Assembly: GCA_002269645.1 (NCBI GenBank)
Contig: NIVC01003653.1
Location: forward strand, 1 to 45,949
DNA: 45,949 nucleotides
Origin: Macrostomum lignano
Taxonomy: Eukaryota
Direction of reading: 5' to 3'
Shown here: piece after piece, positions 1-45,949 of the stretch
Layout of the letters: each line of letters begins with the position of its first letter
Numbering within the stretch: position 1 is the first letter of the stretch
The notes under the pieces: model-generated
Told to the model about the DNA's origin: nothing
The model's input: the letters and a program-made list of their open reading frames with translations, nothing else
Databases searched by the model: none
Translations under genes and position numbers: made by a program

Positions 1-618
1 GGCTGCTGCTGCTGCTGCTGCTGTTGCGGCTGCTGCAGCTGCAGCTGTTGCTGCAGGTGCTGCTGCAGGTGTTCCTGTATAATCCTGCTGCTGCTGCTGC
101 GGTTGCGGCTCTGATGCTGTGCTGCTGCGCTGCTGCTGCTGCTGCTGCTGTTGCGGCTGCTGCTGCCGTGCTGGCTGCTGCTGTGCTGGGCGCTGGCTGC
201 TGTGTGCGGCTGCTGCTCTGCTGCTGGTTGCGGCTGCTGCTGCTGCTGCTGTTGCGGCTGCTGCCACAGCAGATGGCCTGCAGGTGCTGCTGGCAACTGC
301 TCCTGGTAGTATTGTTGCTGGTGCTGCTGCGGCTGCTGCTGCTGTTGCGGCTGCGCTGCTGTTGCGCGCTGCTGCGGCGCTGCCACAGCAGATGGTCCTG
401 CAGGTTCTGCTGCTGCTGCTGAAACATAGAGCTGCTGCGTCCTGCTGCTGTTGCCACAGCTGCTGGGCCTGCTGTAGCCACCGCTGCTGCTGCTGCTGCG
501 AGTCTGGCCGCCGCCGCTGCTGCTGCTGCTTCTGCTGCTGCTGTGCCACCGTTGCTGCGCTGCTGCTTCTGCTCCTGCTGTGGCCGCCGCTGCTGCTGCT
601 GCTGCTGCTGTGGCCGCC

Positions 619-5561: not shown

Positions 5562-8500
5562 GTTTGGTAGTGGTGAGTTGGCCACACCACCATTCGATAC
5601 GCTAAGTGTTGTTCGGATCCCGGGTGATGGGAATTGTTTTTTTCATGCAGTATGTGACCAGTTTCAGGGCACTCCGCTTGAAACCAATGCAGCGTCTTTA
5701 AGGCATGAGCTGACGTGTCGTGCAGTGCAGGTAATGCCAGAATTGATTGACGAAGGCTTTGTTTTACCGGAAAATGCTGATTCTATTATTAATGAGTCTT
5801 TTTCTGAAGGCACCTACGTTCCTGATGAAGTTGTGCCACTTTTAAGCCGGTTTTTTAATGTTGACCTCGTTATTTATCAGGCAAATGACAGTGTATTGCA
5901 GTACTGTATGTCTACTGTGCAGCCACCCACTGCAATTGTACGCATCATTTTACGTCATGAGCACTATGAGTCGTTGCGCGTGACTGATCCACTGCCAGTT
6001 TCCGAGCCCGTTGCAGATGCAGAGGCGCCGAGTTTCACGGAGCAGAGGGCAGATCTTTCCGATTCAGGTCATTTTGGTGCAGGTCATTCTGATGTAGGAT
6101 CTGCTCTAAATAGGTAGGCTTATTTGTGCTGCTGGTCAGTGTAATTTTTTATATTTTAGTTTTTATATTTACACTTTACATTTCATAAATTTTGGCAGTC
6201 TATATTATAGTAACCATTTGTGCATGCATATACGAGTAACTCGATCACAGGCCTGACAGAATACAAAGGCCAGAGGCCCCGGCCCATGACTGCAGCCCAA
6301 TGAACAGGGCATGCCTGGAATGCGGTGCTCTACTCTGGCGCGTGGAGACCAGGAATTTCTGCTGCGCCAAAGGCAAGGTGAAGCTGCCAGGCCGCACCGT
6401 GCCTCAAGTGCTGGCGGATCTGTACATGGGGCGGCACAGATTGAGTGCCGCATTCCTGGCCAACATCAGGAGCTACAACTCGGCGCTGCACCTGACCTCT
6501 CTGGGTGCGAAACTGCGGTTGGTGCCAGGCTGGTGTCCAAGCTTCATCATCAGCGGCCAGATGCATCACCGCACGGCGCCGCTGTTTGCAGAGGCTTCGG
6601 CTGAAGCTCAGGGATAGCAGGTGTATTTCAACGATCGCGAACTCGAAAGCCGCCTGAGTCTCAGCCAGAAGGTGAAGCCGGAGCTACTGGAGCTGCTGCA
6701 GACGCTGCTTCACGAATGCAACGTCTATGTCCGCAGCCTGAAGGCTGCCGCTGAGCGAATTAGCCAAGACCCGGAGCTGGGAGATGCGCGAATTGTGATT
6801 CACCCTGACCGTTGACCATCTGGGGAACACATTCGGTAAGTTAGTTTGTTTATTATAACGAAACTTAAAAATGTAAACGAAAGCGAAAATAAAATGAAAT
6901 TATGATTTTGATTGTAACTCGGACTCGAAAAAATGCTTAATAAGTCATTCAATTTGATTCAATTTGTATCCCACAAACTCTGTTCAAAATCAGGCGCTAC
7001 AACTTGCCTACGGCAAATGAGGTCGGTATCCTGATCGTTGAGGATAATGAGGACGCACCGGCCAGTCGGGATGTCGTGATTCAGCTGCGTGGGGGCGGTT
7101 CCCAGCGAATCACCGAGACGCACCGCTCATATGACCCGCTGGAGTATGTGCTGCTGTTCCCGAATGGCGAGGACGGATGGCACCCAGAGTTGCGGATAAG
7201 TAATGGCAAGAAATTGACGCCCATGAAATACTATGCGAGCGAAATCATGGTGCGAGCGGGCCAGTTCAGTGTGCTGCACTATGGCCGAAGATTATTTCAG
7301 CAGTACCTGGTGGACATGTGTGCTAAGATTGAGGCAGAGAGGCTGCTGTATTTGCGGACCCATCAACAGGACCTGCGCAGCGAGACGTATAGCGGTCTGC
7401 GGGACGCTTTGTTTGCAGCTGATGGCAGGTCTACTGACAGAGATCCGAGTGACATAGGCAAGCCCGCACATGTGCTTCTGTCCTCAAGCTTTGTTGGCGG
7501 GCCAAGGTACCTGATGGAGAGACTGCAGGACGCTATGACATATGTTCACAAGTTCGGTAAGCCGGACCTGTTTGTCACGGCAACATGCAATCCGAGTTGG
7601 CCGGAGATCAGCGCCCAGCTGCTGCCTGGACAGCGGGCTGAAGACCGGCCGGACATTGTTAGCCGAGTCTTTGAAATAAAGAAGAAAGCTCTGCTGGCCC
7701 AGCTAACGAAGCGCTATGGGAAAGAGGCCGCGCACGTCTGCTCGCTAGAGTATCAAAAGCGTGGTGAGTGCAAGTCTGAGTATCAAGTTTTGTAATATTT
7801 ATATATCGTTACAAAAATACTAAATATAGGCAGGGTTTGTGTGATGCAAATTCGATACAAGTTGGATTATTAGATTGCAAGATGTCTTGATACTTTTCTT
7901 GATACTCCAGGTCTCCCCTATGTGCACTTTCTGCTGTGGCTCGCGAGCGGCCAGCGGGTGACTCCGGACCGATACGATGACATCGTGTCTGCTGAGATTC
8001 CGGACCCACAACAGCAGCCTGTGCTGTATGAGCTGGTGAAGACGCACATGATCCATGGCCCCTGCGGCAAGGACAATGCAGCGTGCCCGTGCATGGAGAA
8101 TGGCGAATGCAGCAAGGGCTTTCCGAAGGAGTTCCAGCAGGTGACGCTGACCAGCGATAGTAGCTACCCTTTGTATCGCAGACGGTCGCCTGAGATGGGC
8201 GGATTTACGGTGGACAAACTGTTTAAAGGCCGGAGCATTGGCATGGACAGCAGGCGAGTTAAAATAATAGTAAATTGCCCGGTGGTATTTTGCTTTTGTA
8301 TTTTTAAAAGTTTATAACAATAATTATTTCATAATAATCTAGGTGGGTTGTTCCATACAGCCCTGACCTGTTGCTTCAGTTTGCGTGCCACATGAACGTT
8401 GAAGTTTGTGCCACTGTGAAGTCGGTCAAATACGTGATCAAGTACTTGCTGAAGGGCGGCGACATGGCGACGTTCAAAGTCGATGCCAATAAGAATTCAA

Positions 8501-12470: not shown

Positions 12471-15400
12471 TCAAGTGTAGACTTTGAATCCCTCCTTCGC
12501 CGCTCTCGGATGCGGGGTGCGGGCGATCGGCACGTTCTGCTCGACGTCGGCGGGGCCGGCAGCGTCGGGTGCCGCCGCCTGCGGCTCCACCAGGTCGGGC
12601 TCCGGTGGCAGCGCCTTCAGGGCCGTGCAGTGTCGCCGACAAGTGGCCTGACCGCGCCGTAGCTGCAGCGAGTTGCGTTGCACTTTGGTCACAGTCCAGG
12701 GCTCGCTCTCAAATGGGGTTTGGCCCTTCAGCGGGTTGACGCGTTTCCGCAGCACCTGGTCGCCGACCGCGTAGTTGTGCTCTCTTGGTCTTCGAGCAGC
12801 GTCGGCGTGCCGCTTCATCGTCAGCTTCTGCTTGCGGTCGTGCTCCCGCAGCTCCTTGTCGTTGATGCGCACCCGCGCTGGTGGCCGCCGGCCGGGGACG
12901 CCGTTGCCCAAAGCGCGGCCCATCAGCAGCTCCGCGGGTGCGCGTCCGGTTGTGGCGTGTGGCGCCGTCCGGTACGCCAGAATCCACTCGTCCAGAGCCT
13001 CGCGCCAGTCCCTGCTCTCCGCGATTGCAGCGCGGACGACCTTGTTGATCGATCTGTTCAGGCGCTCGGTCATGCCGTTGGCCGCAGGGTAGAGCGGAGT
13101 GATGGCCCGGTGTCGAATTCCGAAGCTCCTGAGGAAATCCTTGAACTGCGCCGACGAGAATGGAGGCCCATTGTCCGTAACGAGCTCCTCTGGGATGCCG
13201 AACCTGCAGAATGATTCCCGCAGCTTCGGGATGACTGCCTCCGCTGTAGTAGACTGCATGACCTGCACCTCGGGATACCGGGAGTTGTGATCCACGCAGA
13301 CGAGCAGCATCTTGTTCTGCACCGGACCGAGGAAGTCGGCGCCAATCGACAGCCAGGCGCCCTTGGGGATGCTGGACGACTGCAGTGGCGTCGCGCTGAC
13401 TGTCGGCTTATGTGATGTCATGATGCAGCTGCGGCAACTGCTGACGGCCTTGTCCGCATCTGCGCTCATCTTTGGCCACCAGACTTTGCTGCTCAGCCTG
13501 GCCAGTGTCTTCCGCAGTCCCAGGTGTCCGGCATGTGCGAGGCGCAACATTGTCTCCCGGAGGCTGCTTGGCACCACAATCCTGTCCCGCCGAAGCAGCA
13601 CTCCGTCCTCCTCAGCAAGCTCGTCTCGTAGTGCATACAGTGACCTCAGCTCCGGGTGGCCGAGGTCCCACCTGGCTCCCTGGATGGCGGCGATTGCGGC
13701 TTTGATCAGCGGGTCAGCCTGCGAGTGCCGCCTGATGTCCTCTACTGTGAGCGCTCTCGGCACCGCGGCCTGCAGTACCGCGCCGATGCTGGCGGAGTTC
13801 TGCTGTGCATCTTTGTTGTGCCCGGATGTCGCTAGCGGTTGTCGGCTGAGGATGTCTGCCGCATTCTGGGGCCCTGGGCGATACACCACCTTGAAGTTCA
13901 TGTGCTGAATCTGCAGAGCCATTCGCTCGACTCTAGGAGGCGGCCTCGACCCTGGCGCCAGCATGTTGACCAACGGCCTGTGGTCCGTGATCACATCGAA
14001 TCGAGGTGCGCCGTGCAGGTAGTATTGGAATCGGAGACATCCGCATTTCACTGCCAGCGCCTCCTTTTCGGTCTGTGAGTATCTGGACTCTACATCGGAG
14101 AGCGACCGGCTGGCATAGGCCACTGGTCTTGAAGTGCCATCTTCTCGCCGCTGCGCCAAGATGGCTCCGAGTCCCCTCGGACCGGCGTCGACTATGAGCT
14201 CGGTTCGCAGTCTCTGGTCGAAGAAGCTAAGGGCGCCGGCTTCCGTGATCTGCTGTTTCAGCTGCTTGAAAGCGGCGTCTTCAGCTTCGCTCCATCTCCA
14301 GACCGCGCCTTTCTTCGTCAGGCGCCGCAGTGGCTCAGCGATTTTTGACAGCTGCGGTGTGAACACAGCCAGGTAGTTGACAAGGCCTAGAAATGACCTC
14401 ACCTGGCTGGTGGTCTCTGGAGCCTTGAATGCCTTGACTGTCTCGATCTTGTCTTCGGTGGGTTGCACTCCACTGGCTGAGAGCTGCATGCCCATGAATG
14501 TGATCTTGTCTCTGGCTAGCTTGCACTTTCCGGGATTGAGCGTGACGCCGTGCTGCTGGAGGCGGGCGAGGCATGCTGCCAGATTCCTGTTGTGCTCCTC
14601 CAAGGAGTTCCCGAAAACAACGATGTCGTCATGAATCCACTTGACCTTGTCGAGTCCAGCCAGGATGCCTGACATGACGACTTGGAGGATTTCCTGAGCC
14701 GTGGAGAGGCCCATGCACAACCGCTTGAGCCGTCGCAGCCCCCGTGGTGTCGAGAAGGTCAGCAGGTTCCTGTAGCTTTCCGCCACAAGGATCTGGTAGA
14801 AAGCCTTGGCAACATCCAGCTCCGAGAAGACTTTGGCGCCTGCCATGCACCCAGTCACCTCCTCGAAAGTTGGGATTTGATGTCGCTCCCTGATGACAAA
14901 CCTGTTGACATCTCGGAGGTCCTGGGTGATTCGAACTTCGCCGGTCTGCGCCTTTGGCACCACGACCATCCGAGCCACCCAGGGTGCCGGGCCGTTGACA
15001 GGCTCGATGATGTCTAGGTCCTCGAGCAGCTTGAGCTCCTTGTCGACCGCTGCGGCCAGGTGGACAGGAACCCTTGAGGGCGCGTGGCAGACCGGCCTGG
15101 CGTCCTCCGTCAGGTGGATCGTTGCCGTGTAGTTCTTGACGCATCCGATGCCGCTGAAAACCTGAGCGTGCTTGGTGAGGATGTGGCTCAGCTGCAGTTG
15201 CTCTGGGAGGCCTTCGTCCGCTAGTCGATTTCCTTTGAGCAGTTGGTCGATGAGGCCCTCTGATCGGTGGACGGCGAGAACCTCGGGTGTCGGCTGACTG
15301 CTGGGCGGGCCGATACGGAGGATGTCCATTTCGATTGCAGATTTTCTGCCGAGGACCGTCGCGCCCCTGCCGTCGAATATAAAAAAGGGCGCGTCTCTGG

Positions 15401-16468
15401 AGACACCAAAACATTTACAGGCAGAGTCACCTTGCCGACCAGCTTCAGTGGGTGCGAGCTTCCGTAGGCAAACAGCTGGCTGCTGGCTGGCTGCAGTGGG
15501 GGTCGGTGTGGCAGGCCATTGAAACTGCTGACGTCCATGATGTTGCAACCGGCCCCGCTGTCGATATGGATGTCCATGGAGGTGCCGCCGATTTGAGCGG
15601 TCACTCTCGCTGACGCCGGATCACTGGCCACGTGGAAGATTCCTTCCTGGACTGGAGCTGAGTCTTTGTCCAGCAGGTAGGTCACGTTCTCCTGCTCGCT
15701 CGGGATGGCGTTGAGCTGGCCGGCCTTACTGGACCTGCACGCACGGGCGAAATGTCCGATTTTGCCGCATTTCCTGCAGGACTTGCCCCGGGCGGTGTCG
15801 CATTCAGCATGCCCTTGTCTGCCGCACCGGTTGCAGGTGACCTGCGACTTTCCGTCTGCCGCTCTCGAGCCGCGGCCGCTGCTGCTCACTGCTGCCACGT
15901 CCTCCGGCACCGGTCGGCTGCCGAGCTCCATTGCTTGCGCCTGTTGCTCCGCTGTTTCTCTGGCGCGGATCTTGGTCAGCGTGTCAGCCAGGCTGATGTC
16001 GCCTGACTGGAGCAGATCGCGCCGCATTTTCTCAGACCGGCAGTACGCCACAATCTTGTCCCGGATTAGCGAGTTGCTTAAGTCGCCGAACTTGCATGGC
16101 TCCGCCAGTTTCTTCAGTCGGACATACCAGGCATCGATTCCTTCGCCCTCTAGCTGTCGGCAGGTCTCAAACATGTATCGTAGGAAGACGATGTTGTTTT
16201 TCTTGTCCAGGTGGCTTTGAATGTTTTCTGCTAGTTTCTTGGCTGATTCGCCTCGTGCAATGCTGTTGTCTTCGACGAGCGAGTGGATGAATTCGCCGGC
16301 TGAGTAGAGTAGGATTTCTTGAGCTTGATTTTCATCTTTGATGCCGGCCGCGACAAGGTAGCTCTCAAAGCGCCGAGTCCAATTTTTCCACTTTTGTGCG
16401 ATGGTATGCGGCTCACCTTCTGCATCGAAGGTGCCAGGTGGCGATAGTGCTATGGCTTGCGACGCCAT
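12471..16468 (-). pseudogene. gag-pol of Mag-like Gypsy, broken by one apparent 1-bp deletion near 15415 in the protease
   Basis: Two CCHC knuckles (CNRCGRQGH, CRKCGKIGHFARAC), protease IDSGA, RT WIHDD, RNase H VDAG..TDHRPL, integrase HAGH..CRSC and D-D-E. Restoring one A gives VTLPVKCFGVSRDAPFF in a single ORF. Confidence 0.9.
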
Positions 16469-16708
16469 GTAAGAGTTTAATGCATGATTTGGCAGTTGCA
16501 CGAAGAAGTACGAAAGCCACAGTGGGCGAGACGATGTTATTTATTTAATATTTAGTCGGCTACTGCATTGCGTGGGGTGGTGGTCGTAAATGTACACTTT
16601 GCTTACTACGAGTACAGATAAGGGGGCGAGAGTTAGAGAGAGAAAGCCGGCTGACGTACGGACCCGGAAAAATGGGGTGGGCGCTCTATAGCAAATCAAT
16701 GGCTCACA
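16468..16708 (-). repeat. 5' LTR of Mag-like Gypsy (241 bp)
   Basis: TG...CA termini; adjacent PBS. Confidence 0.95.
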
Positions 16709-19516: not shown

Positions 19517-20457
19517 GATACTGATACTGATCCTGATCGACTGAGAAATTGATTATGTCATAAACGCCTCGTGTGATTGGTATGCTACTACTTAAATGAA
19601 ACTTTTTAAATTCATCATTAATTAAAAACAATGAGAGCTAGCCTAGAGGTGAACAGACAGGTGAACAGGTGACCAGTTCGAGTTTTCTGAGAGAAGAGTT
19701 TTTTATTAATTAAAGCTTTTTTCATTGTAAAATTGTATCAGCTTGCGCGCAGCGAGAGACTTTGCCGTTAATTTTTGTGATTGTGATTTCAGAGCTCTGT
19801 GCACCCCATTGGCAGCTAGATAATTACTCGTACTGCCAATATTATTGCACAGACCTGAGACTAATTAAATGTTGAAATTTGGGCTTGACTGTGCTGACCT
19901 TGGCTCCTACCCCAAACCCTTACCCCCTCAATTTTGAGGCAGGCCAGTGTACATTTCTAGCCCTCTGCTTCCGAATGTACATACATGGACTGGAGAGCCC
20001 ACACTGACTCTGTTGTATATGTCTTATCGATTTTTTAGTTTTTACAACAATAGCCTAGCCCAAGGACCTGATAAATAACTTGCTATTAAGTTTGGTTAGG
20101 CACTTACAAGCTCTGATTCTTCAGACATTCAACTCAATCTGCTAAAAACTCTCCTGTGGCGGACAAGTGCAAGCACACCTGAAGACGGCCGTTTAGATGC
20201 CCTCGCGCTCCCTGCTCATCACGCCGCGTCTATGCGCCACCAACCCCGGAGATTAGGGGTGGGGGTTCGCCCACCCAGCCTGAGCTACGTGGGGGTTGGG
20301 GTTGACTGACTAACTAGCGCGTTGGCCTATTTAACCTGATTGTGCGCAGACGCTTGTAAGAACATTTTGCTCTCCGCAAATACAATTTCAAGTCTGCACG
20401 CAGTAGCTACTGCCCGCTTCATTGGTGAGCCCGACAACCCGCCATTTCGTCTAACAC

Positions 20458-21162
20458 ATGGCGCCACCCACTGAGTCAACTGTTGCACTCAAGCTGCCCA
20501 CGTTTTGGGCCATGCAGCCACGCGCGTGTTTCATCCAGGCAGAGGCCCAGTTCCAGCTGCGCGGCATCACCCAGGACGACACCAAGTATCACCACTTGGT
20601 CGCCTCGCTAGATTAACAAACCGCCGAGCGCCTGCTGGACGTTCTGGAAAGCCCTCCGAGCGAGGACAAATACGGCAAACTGAAAGGGCGCCTGCTCGGC
20701 ACTTTCAGTCTCACCCGGCAGCAGCGAGCTAGCCGTTTGCTCAGCATGTCCGGCCTGGGAGATCGCCGGCCGTCCGAGATGATGGACGAGATGCTGGCCC
20801 TGCTTGGTGATCACCGGCCTTGCCTGCTCTTTGAGGAGCTGTTCCGCCAGCAGCTGCCCGTGGACATCCGGATGGCGCTCGCATCCGCCGACTTCGAAGA
20901 CCCCCGGGCAGTCGCGCAGCTCGCCGACCAGCTCTGGGCCAGCCGGCCCCAGCCAGTGGCCGCTTCCGACCAGTTGGCAGGTCCGCCGGAGGTTTGCGCT
21001 GCGCGTCAGGCTGCGCGTCCCCGCACCACGTCGCCCCGGCCTGGGCACCGCGGCACCCGCGCCCAGGAGCTGTGCTACTTCCACCGCAAGTTCGGCGCGA
21101 AGGCTAGGCAATGCGAGCAGCCCTGCAGCTTTCCGGGAAACGGGCCGGCCGGCCGCCAGTGA
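20458..21162 (+). pseudogene. gag of CsRn1-like Gypsy (in-frame TAA at 20614-20616)
   Basis: MAPPTESTVALKLPTFW..QAEAQF..ITQDDTKY; C-terminal LCYFHRKFGAKARQCEQPC knuckle. Confidence 0.9.
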
Positions 21163-21179
21163 CCATCGCGGCGGCCGGC
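21135..21179 (+). promoter_or_regulatory. -1 programmed ribosomal frameshift signal (G_GGA_AAC + 10-bp GC stem-loop)
   Basis: Heptamer at 21135-21141 in the gag frame; 6-nt spacer; stem 21148-21157 / 21170-21179; the -1 frame is pol. Confidence 0.8.
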
Positions 21180-24100
21180 AACCTGCTGCTCATCCCCGAC
21201 GTCCCATCCGGCCGGCGGTTCCTGCCATTCCTGGTGGACACAGGCGCCGAGGTAAGCATTTTCCCAGCCTCTGCAGATGATGCCCGCGCCCGTTCAACTG
21301 GCCCGCCGCTGTTCGCGAACGGCACCCGCATCCGAACCTTCGGCGGCCGCAGCATCACACTGGACGTCGGCCTGAAGACCTGCACCTGGCCATTCGTGTT
21401 GGCCGAGGTCTCCCGGCCGTTGATCGGCGCCGACTTCCTGCGCCACCACGGCCTGCTGGTGGACCTGCCCAACCGCCGCCTTCTGGACGCCGCCTCCCTG
21501 GCCAGTGTGCAATTGCTGGCTGGCTCCGGTTCTGCGCCTCAGCTCGCCGCCGCGGTTGCCAGGGACCCGTACAGCCGGCTGCTGGCGGAGTTCCCCAGCA
21601 TCACGGAGCCCAGCTTCAGCAAAGCCACGCCGCGGCACGGCGTGGAGCAGTACATCCCGACGACGGGCCCGCCGGTGCACGCTAGAGCGCGCCGCCTGCC
21701 GCCCGACAAGCTGGCCGCGGCCAAGGAAGAGTTTCGCAACCTGGAGCAGCTCGGCATTGTGCGGCGGTCCAGCAGCCCCTGGTCCTCGCCGCTGCACATG
21801 GTGCCCAAGACTTCCGGCGATTGGCGGCCCTGCGGCGATTTCCGGCGGCTCAATGACGCGCGGTGCCCGACCGCTACCCCGTGCCGCATATCCAGGATTT
21901 CTCAGCGCGCCTGAGCGGCTGCACAGTGTTCTCGAAGATCGACCTGGTGCGGGGCTACCACCAGATCCCGGTCGCGCAAACGGACATCCCGAAGACCGCC
22001 GTCATTACACCGTTTGGGTTGTTTGAGTTCCTCCGCATGCCGTTCGGGTTGAAAAATGCGGCACAGGCCTTCCAGTGGTTAGTAGATTCGATCTGCCAGG
22101 ACCTGCCGGCCGTCTTCGCGTACATCGACGATTTCCTGGTCGCCAGCAGCAGCCCCGAGCAACACGAGGAGCACCTGCGGAAGCTGTTCCAGCACCTTGC
22201 CGACAACGGCCTGTTGCTCAACCCAGCCAAGTGCCAGTTTGGCCGCAGCGAGATCGATTTCCTCGGCCACAGGATCAGCGCTGCAAGCGCCATGCCGTTG
22301 CCGGACAAGGTCGACGCAGTCGCCAGGTTCGCGCCGCCCACGACGGTGAAGGGTCTCCAGGAGTTTGCCGGCATGGTGAACTTCTATCACCGCTTCGTGC
22401 CCCGCGCAGCCCGGTTGCTGCGCCCGATCTACCAGGCCATGGCCGGCAAGGAGAAGCTGGTGCGGTGGACGCCGGAGCTGACCGAGGCCTTCGACAAGAC
22501 CAAGCAGGCGCTGGCCGACGCGACCATGCTGGCGCACCCCAGGCCCGACGCGCCGCTGGCCCTCACCGTAGATGCTTCTGACACCGCCGTGGGCGCCGTC
22601 CTCGAGCAGCGTGTCGGCCCCGCCTGGCAGCCGCTCGCATTGTTCAGCCGGCAGTTTCGACCTGCGGAGGTTAAGTACAGTGCCTTCGACCGCGAGCTCC
22701 TGGCACTGTACCTAGCGGTCCGCCACTTCCGTTACCTCCTTGAGGGGCGCCACTTCACAGCCTACACGGATCACAAGCCGTTGGCCGCCGCCATGGCCAA
22801 GCTGTCCGACCCGTGGTCCGCTCGCAGCAGCGCCACCTGGCGTACGTGAGCGAATTCACCACGGACGTCCAGCACATCGCCGGTAAAAACAATCCGGTGG
22901 CCGACGCGCTGTCCCGCTGCACCGTGGCCAGCGTGCTACCCGGCATCGATTTTGCCGCGATGTCGCAGGCCCAGCATGCCCCGACCGAGTTGCCGCCGCC
23001 CGGCTCCGGCCTCCGACTAGAGCGCGTGACCCTCCGCCCAGGCCTGGAGCTGCTCTGCGACGTCTCCACCGGCCACCCCCGCCCGCTGGTGCCGCCCGAA
23101 TTCCGACGGCCGGTGTTCGACGCCATCCACGGCCTCGCGCACCCATCAATCCGCAGCTCCCGCCGCCTCGTTCCAGACCGTTTCGTTTGGCCCGGCCTCA
23201 ACCGCGACGTCGGCCGTTGGGCTCGCAGCTGCCTCGCCTGCCAGACGACTAAGGTCCAGCAGCATGTTGTCAGCCCGCCAGACAGCATCCCGGTGCCCCG
23301 CGACCGCTTCGCGCACGTGCACATCGACCTGGTGGGCCAAGGGTGCTCGCACCTGCTGACCGTTGTCGCCGGTTCACGCGTTGGCCGGAAGCAATTCCGC
23401 TGGCAGACACGTCCGCCGCTACCTGTGCGGCCGCATTCATCGCGCACTGGATTGCCCGTTTCGGTGTGCCAAGCGACCTCACGTCAGACCGCGGCCCGCA
23501 GTTCACCTCGGAGCTGTGGTCCAACGTGTCCCGCTTGCTTGGCACGCAGCTGCACCAGACGACGGCCTTCCACCCTCAGGCCAACGGGCTTGTGGAGCGG
23601 TTCCACCGGCAGCTCAAGGCTTCCCTGATGGCGCGGCTGACGGGGCCGTCCTGGACTGCCGAGCTGCCGTGGGTGTTGCTCGGCATCCGCACCGCTCCCA
23701 AGGAGGATCTCGGCACGTCATCGGCGGAGTTGGTGTACGGAGTCCCACTGGCGGTGCCGGGCGAGTGTCTGCAGGCCAGCTCGCCTACGGGCCATGACGG
23801 GTTCCTCACGCGCCTGCGCCAGGCCGTGCAGGCTTTCCGCCCGCCACCGACCTCCCAGCATGGCCGCCGCCCCACCGCCCTGCCTGCTGTCTTGGACACC
23901 TGCACGCACGTCTTCGTCCGCCGCGACGGGCACCGACCGGCGCTGCAACCGCCTTATCTAGGTCCCTTCAAGGTGCTGGAGCGCGGCGCTAAGGCTTTCC
24001 TCCTCGACCTCGTCACTAGGCGGGACTTCGTGTCGGTGGACCGGCTCAAGCCAGCGGCGCTTGACCCTGCCAGCCCGGTTTCGACGCCTCAAATTCGGCC

Positions 24101-24236
24101 AAGGGGGCGCCCACCGCGCAAGCCCACCGTCCCGGGCGCCGCGACGGCCGAACCGCTGCGCCGCCGCCCGCCGCGGCGCCGCCAGCCACACCGCCGTTGC
24201 CGTCGAGTACCGGAGGCCACCGCTGGGGGGGGGGAG
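21135..24236 (+). pseudogene. pol (PR-RT-RH-IN) of CsRn1-like Gypsy with at least three frameshifts
   Basis: [49 protein letters not shown] spread over ORFs 21111-21914, 21863-22849, 22813-23628 and 23343-24281. Confidence 0.9.
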
Positions 24237-24784
24237 CCGTGTGGCGGACAAGTGCAAGCACACCTGAAGACGGCCGTTTAGATGCCCTCGCGCTCCCTGC
24301 TCATCACGCCGCGTCTATGCGCCACCAACCCCGGAGATTAGGGGTGGGGGTTCGCCCACCCAGCCTGAGCTACGTGGGGGTTGGGGTTGACTGACTAACT
24401 AGCGCGTTGGCCTATTTAACCTGATTGTGCGCAGACGCTTGTAAGAACATTTTGCTCTCCGCAAATACAATTTCAAGTCTGCACGCAGTAGCTACTGCCC
24501 GCTTCACTCCTTTCATTTCAAGCATTTTATTCTATATTCTATTATTATCTATTATTATTCTATTCTACTATTCTATTCTATAATTACTTCTGCAAAAACA
24601 CCTTAATTCTTATCCTTTTATGACTTTGCAATTGTAAATATACGGAGTAAATAAATTAACAGCGTTGAGTTTTGAAGCATAGCACAACACTTGATTTATA
24701 TTGCGTAACCATATTGTTCACTTTAATAGAGACTGGTACTTACTGACTTGCCTAACAAATTGATAATGTCATAACTGCTTCGTG

Positions 24785-24831: not shown

Positions 24832-27800
24832 GTCAGTAAACTCCTAAAATAACGAAGCAGTTCAGCAAAGTTCGAGCAGTGATTCTTTTACGAGTAATCA
24901 AGTCGAATGGTGCAATTAGGTCCTACAAAATTTTTTTGTACGAGTTTGTTTTTTGTCTGAATACGCAGAGAAAAGGATTAATCAATGGGGACTGCTCTCT
25001 TATTACGTCCCTAATTTTTGGAACACTATAATTTCAAAAAGTTTGTTTGTGTGAAGTTTAATGAAAAAAGTTTACTGTTTATTTATTATTAGCCATTCTG
25101 ATATTTCGGTTAGTTAAATTACTTTAAATGTACAAATTTATGAGTCATCAATATGATAGTTCCAGGTTGCAGTGTTTTACTGTAAGTACATGTAGTAAGA
25201 TTTAATTTGTTCTATATTAGTTTCCGCCAATGACTGCGCCTCTACACTAATTCAAAAGAGAAAGTTCAGAAAGCAAACTGTTCAGAAAATTTCACAAAAG
25301 GCAGCAATTTAAGCTATTAAATTTATTTAAGATAATTTATTCAAGATTTATTTAATTTATTTAATAATTTATTTAAGATATATAACATTATGATTAAGAT
25401 TAAGATAGTTTAGAATAAAGTCAATTTAGTTATAGTTAATTTTAATTTTTCTGCTGCTGCTCCTGCTGCCCTTGGCGCTCGCTCTGCTTCTGCTGCTGCT
25501 CTCTCTCTCTCTCTTCACTCCGACCTACGGCCGCCCGCGGGTGGCCGGGCCGGGGCCGCTCTGCCACCTGGATCGTCGATAGGCGGTTCCTGGCGGCCCA
25601 CCCTGCGCAGATAATCACAGAGGAGGCTGCCCTCGCCCCCCAGCACGGTAGTCCAGTCGACGCTGATGCCACCCCAGGTGCGGATGCGGGCCTGGTGGTA
25701 GCCTGAACAGGTAAGAAGCAGATGCTCGACCGAGTCCGGCTCTCCACAAGTGATGCACCGGTCGTCAGTAGTCAGGCCGAAACGGTAGAGCGTATCGCGC
25801 GTGAGCGGAGACTTGCGCGTCCTTAGCTGGCAGAGAGTGACCTGCCCCATCTCGGGAGGTCGTCGTGGCCAGGCGTCGGGCTCGGATGCGGGTGCATGTT
25901 ATCTCGCGTTCTCCGCCAACCTCGGAGGACGTGGTGGATGGCGGTCCTAGCGGCGATAGGGGTGACGGTGTTCGGTTGTTGCTGGGCTTCGGTAGCTCTT
26001 CCGGCCAGCTCATCAGCCGCTTCGTTCCCGGGGATGTTAGCGTGTCCCGGGACCCATTGGAGATGGACTCTGCAGCCACTCGGTAGGGCAGCAATGTTGG
26101 CCCAGACACGCCGGGTGACGTCATCCGCCGCGACGGTCGGGCCACGCAGAATCGTTTGGAGGCCGGCCCGGGAGTCCGTGCACAGCCTGACAGTGATGGC
26201 CGGATTGTCGCCAGCACGGAGGGACTCGGCCAGGCGGGCCAGGGCCGCCTCGATCGCAACGAGTTCCGCACTAGTGCTACTTTGCCAGCGGCCAGCCGGC
26301 ACGCAGATATCTTCATATATACTCAGGAGGTCCGAGGTAATAATAGCTCCTCCAGACGCGGTGCCGTCCGGTCGGGTGGATCCATCTGTCCAGATGATTA
26401 CGTCAGCCGGATGGAGGAGGCCCAGCGTCCTCTCAGCAGCCGCACGGCGGAAGTCCGGGGGGTCTGTACGGCGCGTGGCGGCGACCAGGTCGACCGCAAT
26501 GGTCACCTGCTTATCCAGCCAGTGCCAAGGCGGGAGCGCAGGCTCGACAGGGCGCCTGAGGTCCTCAGGCGCATATCCACTGTCCGACACGGCGGAAACA
26601 AGGTTTGGCGCTCAAAATGATGTCTTCGTCCCATTTCAGAATATCGACAGGTAGCCCGGGACCGACCTCGCGCTTCCAGGCTTCATGGGCCCTGCTGCGA
26701 AGGCGTGGCGGTGGCGCGGTCGACAGCAGCTGGCGCGCTGGGTCATCGTCGGGCAGGCTCATAATACGGATGAACTCATTACTGAGGAGCTGTTTGGCGC
26801 GGAGGTGCAGTGCCGGCAGGTCCGCTTCGGCGAGCAGGGAGCGGCAGTTCGTGACACCAAGGCATCCGGGTGATGATGCGCGCGCACTTGTGTTGTTCAG
26901 CTTCCAGCTTGTCCCTAAGGGTGGGCGCGGCATGGTTGAAGTAGATGGAGGCTCCGTAGTCGAACACCGACCTGATGTAGGCCGTGTAGGCGGTGCGCAG
27001 CGTAGTCCGGTGCGCGCCATAAACCTTGCCAGCGAGAGTTTGCAGGCAGCGCCGCCTAGAAGCCATCTTTTGGCGTACCGCTTCAACGTGGTTAGCAAAG
27101 GTCAATTGATCGTCCAGGCGGAGGCCGAGGAACGTGGGTGCTGGATCCTACTTAAGCTCCTGGCCCTCAATGTGCAAAGTTGGGAGGACCTTTCCGCCGC
27201 ATTCACTAGGATTAAGCGTGAAGGTGGTGAAAACGCATTTAGAGTGACTCATCGTCACCTTCCATTTGTTAGCCCACGCGACGACACGGTCCAATGCGGG
27301 TTGGATCTTCTCGGCGCAGGCATGTATAGATCGGCCCGTCGCCAGAAGCGCCGTGTCATCGGCGAAGAGTGACCGGTGGACACTCTCGTCGATGTCGTGG
27401 TCGATGTCATGGACATAGATAAGCCAGAGTAGCGGTGCTATGACCGACCCCTGGGGCAGACCATCGGAAAAGACTCTCCAGTTGGAGGTCGCGTCTCCCC
27501 AGCGCACGCGAGCGCGACGATCGGATAGGAGGATGACATGCTTGGGGACGCCAAGCCGAGCCATTTTTGCGTAGAGGGCCGGGCGCCACACTCGGTCGTA
27601 GGCCTTGGCAAAGTCCAGCAGGATAAGAATGGGGCGCTCCGGCTTTTTCTGTTCGAAAGCATCGAAAATCGCTTGGGTAATGCGCGTCAGTTGGTCCATG
27701 GTGGAGTGTCCTTTACGGAAACCTGCCTGATTGCGGTTAAGCAGGCTACGGGACTCCAGCCAAAAATACAGTCGGTTTGTAACCATACGCTCCATCAATT

Positions 27801-29179
27801 TCCCGACGCAGCTAAGCAGGGAGATGGGCCTGTAGGAGCTGGTAGCGCTCGCATCCTTCTCTTTTTTGAGAATAGCAATAATCTCAGCCCGTCGCCACGC
27901 GGCAGGGACCTCGCCGGTGGCCCAACTGCGGTTGAAGAGTTCGAGGAGGGTACCTCGGCCTTGATCGCTCAGCTGTTTCAGCAGTTCGTTGTTGATGCCG
28001 TCGACCCCGGGCGATTTTCCGTTTTTGATCTGTCGGATTGCCAAGTTGAGTTCAGTAGTGGTGAAGGGTGCACAGATGTCCGATCTGAGGCCTCCGCAGG
28101 AGCAATCGCGGGTGTTAGTCGCGACATGGGCTTCAGTGATGATTTGTCTGTCGACCTCCTTATTCTTTTTGAGCCTAGAGACAGTCGCGTAATCGGCGCA
28201 GAAAAGCTCGGCTTTTTGGCGGTTGGTAACAGCCTTTTTGGCCGCAGTTAGCTCGGTAGCCGGCTTAGAGAAAATGGCCGCCGGGCGGGCAGATTCTAGG
28301 CGACCATCATATTGCTTGATAAGTCTCCACAGCGAATCCCCCGGTCCAAGCGAGGCGACTGAGTCATGGAATTGTTGGCGTCTTTCCTCTCTAATGATGG
28401 TGGCAGCGGCGGCCTTAGCATCGGCAAGGGCCGCGACAGCATCGGCGTCTTCGGGGGTCGCCATGGCAACCAGCCGGGCCGCTTCTCTACTGTCGGCCGC
28501 CTCCTGGCAACGCTCGTTCCAGAAAGGGGGCCTGATGCGCTTACCGTTTCCAAAGGGGATAGAGGCTCTAGCGGCCCGGGTGATCAGATCGGTGAGGTTA
28601 GAGTTCGCCTTGTCGATGGAGAGCTGGTCACTCGCCGGGAGCCCAGCCAGAGACTTGTCAATGTGGCGGCGATAGGAGCCCCAGTCAGCTTTCTTAAAAT
28701 TGTACCGGCTCTTCCCCGCTTTTTGGAAAGGAGTGGCTCTCTGCAGTAACGTGATCCAGATGGGCAGATGATCGGACCCAATGCTCGGGCCCGTGGACCA
28801 GGTCACCTTGCGGGAGAGATCACTCGTAGCGAAAGTAATATCGTGGGAGGATTTTCCTCCGGTGGCCGGGTTAATGCGGGTACAGCTGCCGTCATTGAGG
28901 ATGTCAAGGTTCAGGCGGGTGCACCATTCTTCGAGTTTGCGTCCCAGCGAGTCTTCGCGTTGGAAGAGATCCCATGCGTTGCTGTGGGCGTTGAAATCTC
29001 CGGCAACCATCGTGTGTCTACCGACGCTGACTGCCTCTGGATTGAAGGCCGATTCCGCACTCCCGTCGCGGAGGGCGCGGGTAGCCGGTGGGACGTAGAC
29101 ATTAACGAGCGTAATCGGTTGACTGTTCTCCGGGAAGATAGTTTGGCAAGTTGGTAGATCTGGTTCTTAGAAAGACGAG

Positions 29180-29405
29180 CACAATTGCCGTGGGTCCAGA
29201 CGAGGCAGCTGCGGCACTGCACCGCAGAGAAACTGCCCACGTTGCGTCCGCAGGAGCCACACGGCCAGGACGGGCCTGGATTTGTTTCGACGTCCCCCGC
29301 TCGCAGGATAAGGCGATCGGAGGCCAGGCAAAGAAAAGCGCAAATAAGAAATACCGGGCTGATGGGCGAGGACAGCCCCCCGAGACGGCCGGTAGAGCGG
29401 GCCAT
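29180..29405 (-). CDS. LINE B leader: hydrophobic segment, 2A ribosome-skipping peptide and PHD finger
   Basis: ATG at 29405; LILRAGDVETNPG|P at 29312-29271 matches D(V/I)ExNPGP; followed by CGSC..CRSC..HGNC. Confidence 0.85.
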
Positions 29406-29440
29406 GGGTGCCTGTCTTCTGCTACTCGGGTGAGTGTGGC

Positions 29441-29508
29441 CGGAACAATTGGCCCGAGGGTTCACCTCGGGACACAGCCCCCGCGTGAAGGGTGTTCCGT
29501 TGGCATGC
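29441..29508 (-). ncRNA. HDV-like self-cleaving ribozyme at the LINE B 5' end
   Basis: P1 GCATGCC/GGCTGT (one bulged T), P2 CGGAACA/TGTTCCG, P3 CCC/GGG, L3 TTCACGC, GT, P4 CCCGAGG/CCTCGGG, J4/2 CCAAT, all in canonical nested double-pseudoknot order. Confidence 0.75.
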
Positions 29509-29547
29509 CACCGTTCTGCTGCTGCTCCTGCTGCTGCTCCTGCTGCT

Positions 29548-32342
29548 TTTGCTTTTTGCTTTGCTGCAGGCTAGCACCTCGCGTGGCACAGGGTCGCGCG
29601 AGCCAGTGCAACCACGCCGGCCGGATCCGAACCCAGGACCGACAGCGGGGGCCGAGGAGTACCAAAAATCTGCGTCCGCCTGGTGTAAAGGGCCGGGCAG
29701 TCGCAGAGCCAGTGGTCGATGGTGTCGTCCGCTTCGGCGCACCGGGCACAAGTGGCGGGCACGGCCGGGTTCAGGACAGCATGATAGGCCCTGAGCGCCG
29801 TGGAGTGGCCGGTGCGAAGCTGGGCGAGCAGTCTTTGATCAGCGCGCGAGGCGATAGCCTCCCGATCGCGGGCTGGAGAGACGAGGCGGTAAGCCTCCCG
29901 TATGCGCGCATGGGCCGCCGGCGGGTCACTGAGGACTCTACGGCAGACGGCGGCGGCGGCGTTGAAGGACACGGGGGCAGCAGAAGAAGGCAGGGCGCAG
30001 CCCTCCTTGGCTAGGCGGTCGGCGTGCTCGTTGCCCGGGACGCCGCAGTGGCTGGGCACCCATTGAATGATGATGTCTGCGTCCGTCAGAGCCAGCGCCT
30101 GCAGGGCAGGACCGACGCCGCGGTTGTTGGCGGCGAGCGCATCGATCATGCTGCGGCTGTCCGAGCAGATGACCAAGGACGGGGGGGAGGTAGCGCTGGT
30201 ACCGGCGTGCACCCAGCAAAGGGCGGCGGACAGGGCGGCGACCTCCTCGTCGAAGCTGGACGTAATGGGCGAGCCGCGGCGGGCCTCGGCATGGACGACA
30301 GTCGGGGCAGACGGATCGCCCTCCGTAACCACAAAAGCGTGGCCTCCGGAAAGCATCCCCCCGGTGGCTGAGCCGTCGGTGTACACCGTCCAGACCGGTG
30401 CGGAGAGCGACGCCGTCAGCTCCCGGATGCAGTCGGTGGCGGCGTTGCGGCAGAGGTCAGGTTCGGTAGGCGTGACGAGCAGCGGGAGGGTGCTGCAGAA
30501 TCTGCGAAGGCGGTGAGTAGGCTGGACGGGAGTGGGAGCGCTCGGCGGGAAGAACGGCTGGGCGGCAGGACTTCGCTGAGCTGAGAGCCGCCAGCTGGGC
30601 CGCACAAGGCGATGGGTGGCGATCCCCGCGGCGGCGCGGTGCCGCGGGTGGTCAGCGGGCAGCCGGAGCGCTTTCTCCCATGATCGCGCGATGAGGCACT
30701 TAGAGTGCATTTTGTAGCTGATGACTCCAGCCTCAAGCCGGAGCGCCTCGACGGGCGAGGTCTGTAGTTGGCCAGTGATGCGGCGGAGAGCTCGGTTCTG
30801 GGTCCGTTCGAGCTCGTCGCGGCGCGATTCGCTGATCCACGGCTGCCAGGCCGGTGCGGCGTAGTCCAGCACAGATTTAATGAGCGCGTTGAAGACGGTC
30901 CGAAGCTTCTCCTTGCGCCAGCCCCAGTCCTGATGAGCCAAGGCGGCCAAGACGTTGCAGCGGGCGCGGGCCTTGGAGGTGACGTCGCGGACGTGAGGAC
31001 CGAAGGTCAGCGTCCTGTCGAGGATGACGCCGAGAAAGCGCGGGTTGGGGTCCACGGCGAGGGGCGTGCCCTCGAGCAGGATCTGGGGCTGAAGGCCGGC
31101 TTCGCTGGTGTAGTTCGTAAACAGCGTGACGACGCTCTTCGAGGGATTCAGGGTCAGCTTCATCTGGCGACTCCAGCTGGCCACCGCGTCGAGGCCCTCC
31201 TGAAGGGAGTTGGTAGCCGCGGCCACAGAACTGTTCTGGACGCGGATGGCAAGGTCGTCAGCGTACAGGGACGGAGCGACCCCGGGCGGGCACACCCGGA
31301 CCACGCCATCGATGAACAGCAGGAAGAGAAAGGGCGCAAGCACCGAGCCTTGGGGCAGGCCCTGGCGAAGCGGCCGCGGATGGCTCAGGGCGCCGTTGAT
31401 GCAAGTAGACGCCCAGCGGTCGTTCAGGAAAGCGAAGCACCAGCGGGTCAGCATTGGCGGGGCGCCAAGTTCAAGCATGATCAGGATAAGCATCTGCCGC
31501 CACACCCTGTCGTAGTCTCTGCTGTAGTCCAGGAGAGCCAGCAACGTCCGGATGTGTGGCTTTGATTGGAAGCCATCGCTGATCGCCTGGGTGAGTTCAA
31601 GAATGGCGTCCTCGCAGGAACGCATGCGCCGGAAGCCAGATTGCCAGCAGCTGATCCAGCCGCGGGCCTCGGCAAGGTCGTAGAGCCGGCAGAAGATCAT
31701 GCGCTCCAAGGTCTTGACGATGCAGGACGTCAGACTGACAGGCCGGAAGCTGTCGATGCGGCTGGCAGGTTTCCCCTGTTTGAGCAGGGGGATGATGGTG
31801 GCCTTCCTCCAGGGGGCCGGGACAACACCAGTCGTCAGGGACTCGTTGAAGACGTTCAGCAGGTTGGCCCGGGCGCGGGGGCCCAGCGCCTTGATGAAGC
31901 TCGGCGGGATGTCGTCGGGGCCGGCAGCTCCCCGGCCACGGAGCCGGGTGATCGCCGAATCCAGCTCCTCCTGGGAGATAGGGGACTCCGGAGGGGCAGT
32001 CGCGACGGCCCTGCCGAGGAGTTTGCGGGCTTGGCGGTTGGTGCGGCGGTCGGCAGCAGAGAAGGACAGCCGGTTAACCGCACTGTAGTGCTGCATGAAA
32101 TGATCGGCTTTGGCCGCGTTCGATATGACAGGTTTGCCGTTGACAGAGAGGGCAGCGTTAGGGGCTGCGGAGCCGTTGCTGCTGCTCAGGGAGCGGATGA
32201 CCCTCCAGGTCTTCTGAAGGTCGGGGCTCGCTTCGAGATCGCCGAGGAAGTCGGCCCAGAACCGCTCTTTGGCTTCCCGGGTGAGGCGGCAGGCTTCCTG
32301 GCAGGCAGCGACCCACTCCGCGCGTTTGGGAGGGCCAGATTA
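29548..32342 (-). mobile_element. 5'-truncated Ingi/I-group LINE 'A' (RT, RNase H, CCHC) with an open frame 32339-29571
   Basis: PQGSVLAP, YADD, FLGV, VYTDGS, SDSRS, WVPSHCGVPGNE, CARC..HWLCDC; GCAAA-like tail; candidate 10-bp TSD TCCTGCTGCT at 29538-29547 and 32343-32352. Confidence 0.93.
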
Positions 32343-33180: not shown

Positions 33181-33512
33181 CGTTCGTTTCCGCCAATGAC
33201 TGCGCCCCTCACCACCGGCTGGGGCGCAAATGAAGAAGTTATTCCGACACTGTACATTGCTAAGTACACGGGCGTGTCCCCTCTGGGGGAATGGGTAGGC
33301 GTATATGATAGTACAGTCTTGTCAGGCAGCTAGAAAAGTTTGGTTGAGAAATTTTTACCAAGCCTCTGCACTGGGGCGCCAACGAACTCGAATTTATTCC
33401 AAAGCACAGTACATGCTATGTACACTGGCCTATGCCGCCTATCCCCTATGATCTGGGGTAATGAGTGAGTGAGAGCGGCCCAATGCCAGAAAAAGCTATT
33501 ATAGCGTCCATA

Positions 33513-35699: not shown

Positions 35700-36645
35700 C
35701 AGCAAGCAACCCTCCAGATAGCAATCACCCCCAGATAGCAAGCATCTCCAGATAGCAAGCACCCCCAGATAGCAGGCACCCCAGATAGCAAGCATCCACC
35801 TAATAGCAAGCACCTCAAGATAGCAAGCATCCACCTAATAGCAAGCACCCTTAGAAAGCAAGCACCCCCAGATAGCGAGCATCCACCTAATAGCAAGCAC
35901 CCTTAGATAGCAAGCATCCACCTAATAGCAAGCACCCTTAGATAGCAAGCATCCACCTAATAGCAAGCACCCTTAGATAGCAAGCATCCACCTAATAGCT
36001 AGCACCCTTAGATAGCAAGCATCCACCTAATAGCAAGCACCCTTAGATAGCAAGAATCCCCAGATAGCAAGCACCCCCAGATAGCAAGCATCTCCAGATA
36101 ACAAGCACCCCCAGATAGCAGGCACCCCAGATAGCAAGCATCCACCTAATTGCAAGCACCCCAAGATAGCAAGCATCCACCTAATAGCAAGCACCCCCCA
36201 GATAGCAAGAACCCCCAGATAGCAAGCACCACCAGATAGCACGCACCCCCAGATAGCACGCATCTCCAGATAGCAAGCACTCCAAGATAGCAGGCACCCC
36301 AGATAGCAAGCATCCACCTAATAGCAAGCACCCCCAGATAGCTAGAACCCCCAAGATAGCAAGCATCCCCCCAGATAGCAAGCACCCCCAGATAGCACGC
36401 ATCTCCAGATAGCAAGCACTCCAAGATTGCAGGCACCCCAGATAGCAAGCATCCACCTAATAGCAAGCACCCCAAGATAGCAAGCATCCACCTAATAGCA
36501 AGCACCCTTAGATAGCAAGCACCCCCAGATAGCAAGCACCCCCAGATAGCAAGCACCCCCAGATAGCAAGCACCCCCAGATAGCAAGCATCCCCAGATAG
36601 CAAGCACCCCCAGATAGCAAGCACTCCAAGATAGTAGGCACCCCA
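35700..36645. repeat. ~17-19-bp variant satellite (AGCAAGCACCCCCAGAT / AGCAAGCATCCACCTAAT)
   Basis: Directly visible, with higher-order units. Confidence 0.95.

Positions 36646-41573: not shown

Positions 41574-45949
<4,376 letters not shown>

Follow-up and report, generated by a model that had tools for sequence, protein, structure and literature searches.

A candidate ribozyme at the head of a defective LINE

We analyzed a 45,949-nt contig of Macrostomum lignano (NIVC01003653.1 of assembly GCA_002269645.1; hereafter the window), a stretch of eukaryotic DNA rich in transposable elements, and focused on the 5′ end of a long interspersed nuclear element (LINE) on its minus strand, LINE B. Positions 29508 to 29441, at the head of this element, are predicted to encode a self-cleaving ribozyme of the hepatitis delta virus (HDV)-like type. 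Directly upstream lies a second, 5′-truncated LINE, LINE A (29514 to ∼32300, minus strand), which encodes reverse transcriptase (RT) and RNase H in an open reading frame (ORF) at 29571 to 32096. The features at the locus are as follows (P, paired region; L, loop; J, joining segment; TSD, target-site duplication).

25470-29513, minus strand: LINE B as a whole (ribozyme, leader-2A, PHD finger, C-terminal half of the APE endonuclease, RT, RNase H, CCHC finger, (GA)n/CAG tail); defective
29514-29534, minus strand: upstream copy of the TSD, 21 nt, GCAGCAGGAGCAGCAGCAGAA; also the end of the CAG-rich tail of LINE A
29509-29513, minus strand: five nucleotides, CGGUG, between the TSD and G29508
29502-29508, minus strand: P1 5′ strand, GCAUGCC; G29508 would be nucleotide +1, cleavage falling just 5′ of it; U29505 forms a bulge
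29500-29501, minus strand: J1/2 spacer, AA (A-rich and 1 to 3 nt long in relatives)
29493-29499, minus strand: P2 5′ strand, CGGAACA; forms a perfect 7-bp helix with 29447-29441
29480-29492, minus strand: P3 (CCC/GGG) around L3 (UUCACGC); P3 CCC at 29492-29490, L3 at 29489-29483, P3′ GGG at 29482-29480
29474-29479, minus strand: P1 3′ strand (P1′), GGCUGU; 6 nt, as in most of the family
29472-29473, minus strand: J1/4, GU; G29473 is the P1.1 partner of the L3 cytosine
29453-29471, minus strand: P4 hairpin, CCCGAGG-UGAAC-CCUCGGG; perfect 7 bp
29448-29452, minus strand: J4/2, CCAAU; C29452 occupies the catalytic-cytosine position
29441-29447, minus strand: P2 3′ strand, UGUUCCG, pairing with the P2 5′ strand; 3′ end of the ribozyme
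29271-29405, minus strand: short leader ORF, from an ATG at 29405 to a 2A-like GDVETNPGP (29297-29271), which has the canonical form of a ribosome-skipping motif, with a PHD-type Cys/His finger from 29267
25449-25469, minus strand: downstream copy of the TSD, 21 nt, directly after the (GA)n/CAG-rich tail of LINE B

Read as RNA, the minus strand from 29508 to 29441 is GCAUGCC AA CGGAACA CCC UUCACGC GGG GGCUGU GU CCCGAGG UGAAC CCUCGGG CCAAU UGUUCCG. These letters are identical to those quoted in an initial annotation that had proposed an HDV-like ribozyme here with its helices in HDV order, and all of those helices are present. The strands are arranged P1-P2-P3-L3-P3′-P1′-J1/4-P4-J4/2-P2′, which is the nested double pseudoknot of HDV and which is found alike in the window and in six related copies described below. 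P3 consists of three G-C pairs, and C29487 of L3 can pair with G29473 of J1/4 to form P1.1. The P1 5′ strand pairs with 29479-29474 through G-U, C-G, A-U, G-C, C-G, and C-G, with U29505 bulged after the third pair, giving 6 bp and one bulge. HDV-like ribozymes are cut at the first nucleotide of P1, and L3 and J4/2 form their core (PMC4908430). The cytosine that had been noted after P4 at the catalytic position is C29452, and this first cytosine of J4/2 is invariant in all seven sequences compared. L3 had also been likened to that of CPEB3-type ribozymes, a resemblance supported by a primer published for the Cpeb3 ribozyme (GTTCACGTCGCGGCC, beginning 18 nt from the cleavage site).

The element behind this fold is no longer intact. 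Its APE domain matches only positions 150 to 225 of the 225-position Pfam profile, reflecting a deletion between the PHD finger and the peptide ITLVNVYVPP that removed ∼150 positions from the N-terminal side of the profile; a stop follows the RT at 27148, and the frame changes before RNase H. LINE B measures ∼4.0 kb, compared with ∼5.2 kb for a full-length relative (L001, 4683-9895). With half of its APE deleted, with stops and with frame changes, this copy is dead, and it is not likely to have a current function.

Related LINEs share the fold and vary it by compensatory changes

The RT ORF in the window has its nearest protein relatives, at 50 to 62% identity, in ENA assemblies ERZ25068762 and ERZ25070917 and in the barnacle Amphibalanus amphitrite. 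Six related LINE copies, belonging to five lineages (L001/L003, L004, L006, L095, and L097) and encoding proteins ∼50 to 60% identical to that of the window, carry the same fold, in each case ∼200 to 380 nt upstream of a D[V/I]ExNPGP 2A motif.

4683-4757: ribozyme of L001
5566-5640: ribozyme of L003
1565-1627: ribozyme of L004
3375-3437: ribozyme of L006
3532-3606: ribozyme of L095 (the same copy as L096)
1090-1157: ribozyme of L097

The 2A motif is present in LINE B, in these six copies, and in L005, a 5′-truncated copy without the ribozyme. In the window, L004, and L097, the 2A is followed by a PHD-type finger; in L001, L003, L005, L006, and L095, it is followed by an Arg-rich stretch and then APE. 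Pfam profiles identify APE, RT, and RNase H in the ORFs of the family, whose layout is a ribozyme (the first ∼63 to 75 nt), a short leader, 2A, a PHD finger where there is one, APE, RT, RNase H, a CCHC finger, and a GA/GAA/CAG microsatellite tail. In L097 (1-8260), a MULE transposase gene is inserted between APE and RT.

Other homologs were uninformative about the 5′ end. Three A. amphitrite loci with related RT genes (L007, L008, and L202) showed neither ribozyme nor 2A in the examined, 5′-truncated stretches. The 2A motif occurs in none of 83 homologous proteins, and therefore none of them reaches the N terminus. A protein search with the leader-2A-PHD ORF returned no match, and a blastn search of LINE B against the window found no second copy.

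How the fold has diverged is clearest in L001, the RNA of which reads GGACGUC AAC UGGAGCA CCC UCCACGC GGG GACGUCC GU CUCUCCC ACAACCACC GGGAGAG CAAAU UGCUCC. Relative to the window, P1, P2, and P4 all differ yet pair, while P3, L3, J1/4, and J4/2 are almost unchanged. To compare all seven sequences we set aside plain MAFFT alignments (A1 and A3), which lost register after P1′ because P1′ is 6 nt long in some sequences and 7 nt in others, and replaced them with N-padded structural alignments (A2 and A4) and a model-derived alignment (A5). In A2, a hand-made alignment of the seven sequences, 93.9% of cells fall in standard pairs, compared to 42 to 54% when the 3′ partners are slid by 1 to 3 columns. 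Both sides have changed in 15 of 25 pairs (P1, 4/7; P2, 5/8; P4, 6/7), and none of 500 shuffles reached the covariation score. Since A2 was built around the structure, we made A5 as a fitting control, aligning the seven sequences to a covariance model that encoded only P2, P3, and P4 and counting P1 afterwards. On this alignment, P1 is 93.2% paired, compared to 32 to 68% when slid; both sides have changed in four of its seven pairs, and again 0 of 500 shuffles reached the score.

The second pair of P1.1 covaries as well: position 2 of L3 is G only where J1/4 is GC (L004 and L097); elsewhere J1/4 is GU and that position is U or C, leaving U-U or C-U at that pair. The C3/G pair between L3 and J1/4 is invariant, as are P3 (CCC/GGG), the J1/4 G, and the first C of J4/2 in all seven sequences; the consensus is U-N-C-M-C-G-Y for the 7-nt L3 and C-N-A-A-K for J4/2. 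The covariation of P1 to P4 among copies that the initial annotation had called for takes the form of compensatory changes in P1, P2, and P4 around an invariant P3. Together with the recurrence of the double pseudoknot in six relatives, the covarying second P1.1 pair, and the invariant core, it bears out the HDV-like reading of the site.

Two of the relatives have an ATG inside the ribozyme, at the J1/2-P2 boundary (AUGGAG; ∼1572 in L004 and ∼3381 in L006). That of L004 is in the 2A reading frame, with one stop between them in that copy, and translation might start within the ribozyme in some lineages.

Element 5′ ends coincide with the predicted cleavage site

LINE B is bounded by an exact 21-nt direct repeat (29534-29514 and 25469-25449). 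This is best read as a real TSD that arose when LINE B inserted into the CAG-rich tail of LINE A, because the two elements share no DNA beyond this 20- to 21-nt repeat; they are only ∼40% identical in amino acid sequence and belong to different families. In three of the relatives, the TSD adjoins G1, the predicted +1 nucleotide, without an extra nucleotide: L001 (14 nt, GAGGCACGATATCC, with the 3′ copy after its (GA)n tail), L003 (14 to 15 nt, GAGAGGGCGAAAAA(A)), and L095 (13 nt, GAGGGACCGCGGC), in which G1 is the first base of a 6-bp P1. The homology between L001 and L003, two insertions of one family with unrelated flanks, also starts exactly at G1, and L001, L003, L095, L097, and the window copy have mutually unrelated TSDs and flanks. 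The 5′ ends of the elements therefore coincide with the predicted cleavage site, as self-cleavage predicts.

The window copy departs slightly from this pattern. The initial annotation had placed the ribozyme at the exact 5′ end of LINE B. The ribozyme does head the element, but it starts 5 nt inside the boundary, the CGGTG noted between the TSD and G29508 lying, as stated there, at 29513-29509. Such an offset is not unusual for the family, because L097 likewise has a 13-nt TSD, then five extra nucleotides (TCCTG), and then G1. Added or variable nucleotides at 5′ junctions have been described for R2 (PMC3774820), and the CGGUG of the window was most likely added at the 5′ junction during insertion. 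In L097, TCCTG duplicates the end of the TSD (TCCTGG, then TCCTG, then G), which suggests microhomology or slippage when that junction formed. A comparison of 5′ ends among copies, which had been suggested as a check, accordingly gives a TSD adjoining the predicted cleavage G in three relatives and 5 nt away in a fourth.

Ends at G1 do not by themselves single out cleavage. The conserved 5′ structure could be a functional RNA of HDV-like topology that is not catalytic, such as part of an internal promoter, a translation element or internal ribosome entry site, or a binding site for the element's own protein, with transcription initiation setting the G1 ends; TSDs that adjoin G1 fit a +1 transcription start equally well. 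The first 77 nt of the trypanosomatid element L1Tc act as both promoter and ribozyme (PMC3383444), cleavage of the present family is predicted only, and no Rfam ribozyme model matches it. A DNA promoter, however, needs no compensatory changes of RNA pairs in four helices, including the P1 pseudoknot, and the invariant positions are exactly those of the HDV active site (L3 U...C.CG, the P1.1 C-G pair, and the first C plus AA of J4/2). We consider a purely noncatalytic role unlikely. A dual role as promoter and ribozyme, as in the Pr77 sequence of L1Tc, is possible and compatible with a ribozyme at this site.

The P1 helix of the window copy is interrupted

The P1 of the window is the weakest in the set, at −5.0 kcal/mol compared to −6.8 to −10.8 kcal/mol in the relatives, all of which have perfect 6-bp or 7-bp P1 helices beginning with G. 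It had been proposed that restoring one A in the 3′ strand (GGCAUGU) would repair the helix. This does yield a 7-bp P1 (−9.9 kcal/mol), but it is not the only repair and probably not the best. An ancestral 5′ strand GCAGCC would give a perfect 6-bp P1 with a G-U pair at the cleavage site (−8.8 kcal/mol). P1′ has 7 nt in L001 and L003 alone and 6 nt in L004, L006, L095, and L097; the shorter form thus occurs in four of the five relative lineages, including both PHD-bearing ones (L004 and L097), which are closest in architecture. G1 and P3 lie 15 nt apart in L004, L006, and L097 but 16 nt apart in the window. Given these lengths, a 1-nt insertion into the 5′ strand of an ancestral GCAGCC is at least as parsimonious as the loss of an A.

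Judged by its sequence, the window copy is a degenerate member of the HDV-like class with an interrupted P1. Mismatches in P1 are reported to abolish or strongly reduce the in vitro cleavage of otherwise good HDV-like ribozymes (PMC3774820). Because the weakest P1 of the set coincides here with the APE deletion and the stops, this copy is most likely a relic with impaired activity or none.

We also considered whether the upstream CAG repeat might supply the 5′ strand of P1 instead, its GCAGC pairing with GCUGU (29478-29474), so that cleavage would fall in the flanking tail and GCAUGCC would lie in a long J1/2. The alternative 5-bp duplex (GCAGCA/GGCUGU, −6.9 kcal/mol) is more stable than the bulged internal P1 (−5.0 kcal/mol), and upstream cleavage that uses target sequence is documented for R2 and Dong, many R2 ribozymes cleaving inside 28S sequence (PMC3774820). 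In all relatives, however, the P1 5′ strand is inside the element and the TSD adjoins G1. The CAG repeat is the tail of LINE A and the TSD, which makes its complementarity an accident of the insertion site, and the alternative pairing leaves a mismatch beside P3. We regard this arrangement as very improbable.

Model searches and statistical controls

A search of the window with a strict descriptor, which was built on the candidate's own features, found 3 loci, whereas a dinucleotide shuffle of the window is expected to give 0.175. A covariance model derived solely from the relatives identified the window site with 38.6 bits (E = 6.5e-7) as its sole significant match in the window, the next-best match in the 92 kb of sequence searched scoring 11.6 bits. 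Matches to the core motif in unrelated DNA served purely as a negative control. None of the stretches listed from JGI metagenomes (86), GTDB genomes (103), and IMG/VR (1) has P1, P2, and P4; across 191 such matches in metagenome, prokaryote, and viral DNA, the summed pairs of P1, P2, and P4 ranged from 2 to 13, compared to 17 to 21 at the eight LINE-linked loci (seven distinct copies, with L095 and L096 being the same).

These results bear on the simplest alternative, that inverted repeats in GC-rich LINE sequence fell into this arrangement by chance. Loose descriptors do find much: a first, permissive descriptor proved too loose, giving 191 raw parses in the window (overlapping alternatives over far fewer loci), and the strict one still leaves two other loci. 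Chance nevertheless predicts only 0.175 strict-descriptor loci per shuffled window, and it accounts neither for a sole significant match to a model trained on other sequences, nor for recurrence with covariation at the homologous position of six related copies, nor for the missing helices in the 191 core-motif matches from unrelated DNA. The chance reading is effectively refuted.

The two other strict-descriptor loci, both on the plus strand, were rejected. The one at 44240-44310 has no family core, has a mismatched, G-U-rich P1, is antisense to a LINE, and has no model match; the one at ∼331 sits in a CTG repeat. Two repetitive tracts of the window give spurious matches with loose RNA descriptors, namely, a long, imperfect CTG/CAG-type repeat at ∼130 to 400 (plus strand) and a minisatellite at ∼35750 to 35900 (minus strand), the units of which contain GTGCTTGCTAT...GGTGGATGCT.

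Curated models gave no support. Rfam cmscan at the gathering score reported no HDV-type family in the whole window, and at E ≤ 10 there was no HDV-type match (HDV, CPEB3, drz-Agam, or others) either in 29300-29650 or in the intact relative L001 (4660-4780). The site is therefore a member of no curated Rfam seed family. The descriptor or covariance search for HDV-like ribozymes that had been recommended thus succeeds with the strict descriptor and the relatives-only model and fails with the Rfam models.

A self-cleaving ribozyme is the best explanation

Our preferred explanation, to which we assign a probability of roughly 0.82, is that 29508-29441 (minus strand) is a degenerate HDV-like self-cleaving ribozyme that heads a family of single-ORF LINEs and would serve to process their cotranscripts. 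Several points weigh against it. The covariation sample comprises seven sequences in six lineages, and A2 was built by hand around the structure. The window copy itself has a bulged P1 and five unexplained nucleotides upstream of G1, and the ancestral P1 of its family has to be deduced from more distant relatives, since no second LINE B copy was found. A +1 transcription start from an internal promoter would produce the same G1 ends. Minimum free energy z-scores for nested-only folds are modest (−0.6 to −1.4, except −4.05 for L001), although ViennaRNA cannot score the pseudoknot, which limits these values. Finally, the Rfam models fail on the site; we judge them to be narrow seed families, which leaves the broader structural class open to it.

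If the ribozyme reading is correct, the element's life cycle would run as follows. By analogy with R2 and L1Tc, transcription would begin outside the LINE, at a host promoter or in an upstream element such as LINE A, and would yield a longer read-through RNA that includes it; read-through from LINE A into the head-to-tail LINE B would be the kind of cotranscript on which such a ribozyme acts. The first ∼70 nt would fold cotranscriptionally into the double pseudoknot, the fold itself being supported by covariation. The J4/2 cytosine (C29452 in the window) would then catalyze cleavage on the 5′ side of G29508, and upstream sequence would be shed while the ribozyme stays at the 5′ end of the unit-length RNA, both steps again as in R2 and L1Tc. 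Target-primed reverse transcription would, by the same analogy, copy the ribozyme, so that each full-length daughter would start at G+1 and inherit it.

Comparison with known ribozyme-bearing and 2A-bearing elements

Among LINEs, an HDV-like ribozyme at the 5′ end is an established feature of R2, R4, Dong, and L1Tc/ingi (PMC3774820, PMC3383444). In whole-element layout, the closest analog of the present family is the L1TcRz/Pr77 ribozyme of L1Tc and ingi from Trypanosoma cruzi and other trypanosomatids. The L1Tc ribozyme spans nt +1 to +77 and cleaves 5′ of +1; in both cases the ribozyme occupies the first ∼70 to 77 nt of an APE-type LINE (here nt 1-63 to 1-75) and travels with the element (PMC3383444). 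Both have a single long ORF with an N-terminal 2A followed by APE, RT, and RNase H (PMC3708506), and both have dispersed insertions that are not specific to ribosomal DNA (rDNA). Unlike L1Tc/ingi, the present family has a metazoan host, its nearest named protein relatives being from A. amphitrite, and no trypanosomatid protein is among the 83 homologous proteins; it also differs in the PHD finger that follows 2A in some lineages and in its GA/GAA/CAG microsatellite tails. The likeness is one of layout.

R2, R4, and Dong share the fold, which there releases the element RNA from a cotranscript, a role that we infer here. Their ribozymes also show compensatory changes in P1 around a conserved P3/L3/P1.1 core (PMC3774820). 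These elements differ in encoding a restriction-like endonuclease and in inserting site specifically (28S rDNA or TAA repeats), whereas the present family is APE type and has varied target sites. In addition, their P1 often forms with upstream target sequence, their J1/2 spans tens to hundreds of nucleotides, and they have little or no P4; in the window family, P1 is internal, J1/2 is 1 to 3 nt, and P4 is a compact hairpin. Having neither the restriction-like endonuclease nor the 28S insertion site, the family is not of the R2 type. RTE-type elements also carry HDV-like ribozymes.

The intronic CPEB3 ribozyme of mammals is similarly compact (∼68 nt) and has a near-identical L3 (primer GTTCACGTCGCGGCC). 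It also has GU as J1/4, C-x-AAU as J4/2, and a 7-bp P4, as does the window. It differs in being single copy, intronic, mammalian, and without linkage to a LINE, and P3 here is CCC/GGG. The Rfam CPEB3_ribozyme model matched neither the window nor L001 at E ≤ 10. Because this model fails and convergence on the HDV active site is documented, we claim no homology to CPEB3.

Among metazoan elements, the leader-2A arrangement matches that of single-ORF, APE-type LINEs of the CR1, Crack, L2, Rex1, and Ingi clades (Odon et al. 2013, PMC3708506), a report in which ribozymes are not mentioned at all. A PHD finger after 2A is listed there for the CR1 and Crack clades. The LINE B family carries RNase H in addition. 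To our knowledge, the CR1 and Crack clades do not bear this domain.

Other elements in the window

Several further mobile elements surround the LINE A/LINE B pair. Direct repeats of 267 bp that are 100% identical (20155-20421 and 24240-24506) flank a Gypsy-like long terminal repeat (LTR) retrotransposon at 20155-24506 (plus strand), whose ORFs for RT, RNase H, and integrase lie at 21863-24281. If the repeats are its LTRs, as we presume, the element would have inserted very recently. A second Gypsy-like gag-pol at 12471-16501 (minus strand) has a 1,025-amino-acid pol ORF (RT, RNase H, and integrase) and a CCHC gag, and a Helitron_like_N ORF lies at 7004-7795 (plus strand). A third LINE (RT and RNase H) at 42150-44138 (minus strand) has no 2A motif and no ribozyme match within the window. 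LINE A, being 5′-truncated, supplies no second ribozyme; a weak tblastx match near 33150 proved spurious, as the DNA there is AT-rich and unrelated. On both sides of the LINE A/B pair, at 25217-25243 and 33183-33209 (plus strand), lies a 27-nt motif that contains GGCGCAGTCATTGGCGGAAAC. Its two occurrences have the same orientation and are 93% identical, and may be either a small repeat present twice or one larger repeat that the insertions have divided.

Implications for LINE biology

That HDV-like ribozymes trim LINE transcripts is already known; what this case adds is their predicted association with a dispersed family of metazoan APE-type LINEs that also carry 2A and RNase H. In the literature searched, no paper connected HDV-like ribozymes to metazoan LINEs with a 2A, to barnacles, or to crustaceans, and the pairing of ribozyme and 2A has so far been known only from the trypanosomatid L1Tc/ingi elements (PMC3383444, PMC3708506). 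We speculate, with considerable doubt, that ribozyme and 2A form an ancient, widely inherited cassette that single-ORF LINEs with RNase H still retain in crustacean-type metazoan genomes, and that its CPEB3-like core is of the kind from which mammalian CPEB3 descends. If so, the core of L3 UUCACGY, J1/4 GU, and J4/2 C-N-AAU would represent a LINE-borne source type of domesticated ribozymes.

The unusually clean covariation of the fold and its small size (63 to 75 nt) make this family well suited to cleavage assays. Models of HDV-like ribozymes would gain from its inclusion, given that the present Rfam models miss it entirely, and the motif can be used in annotation to mark the full-length 5′ ends of this LINE family precisely. 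More generally, HDV-like ribozymes at LINE 5′ ends explain how elements without promoters obtain unit-length RNAs from read-through transcripts. Most characterized cases are site-specific elements (R2, R4, and Dong) or the protist L1Tc; in the family described here, the predicted ribozyme begins at nucleotide +1 of the element itself.

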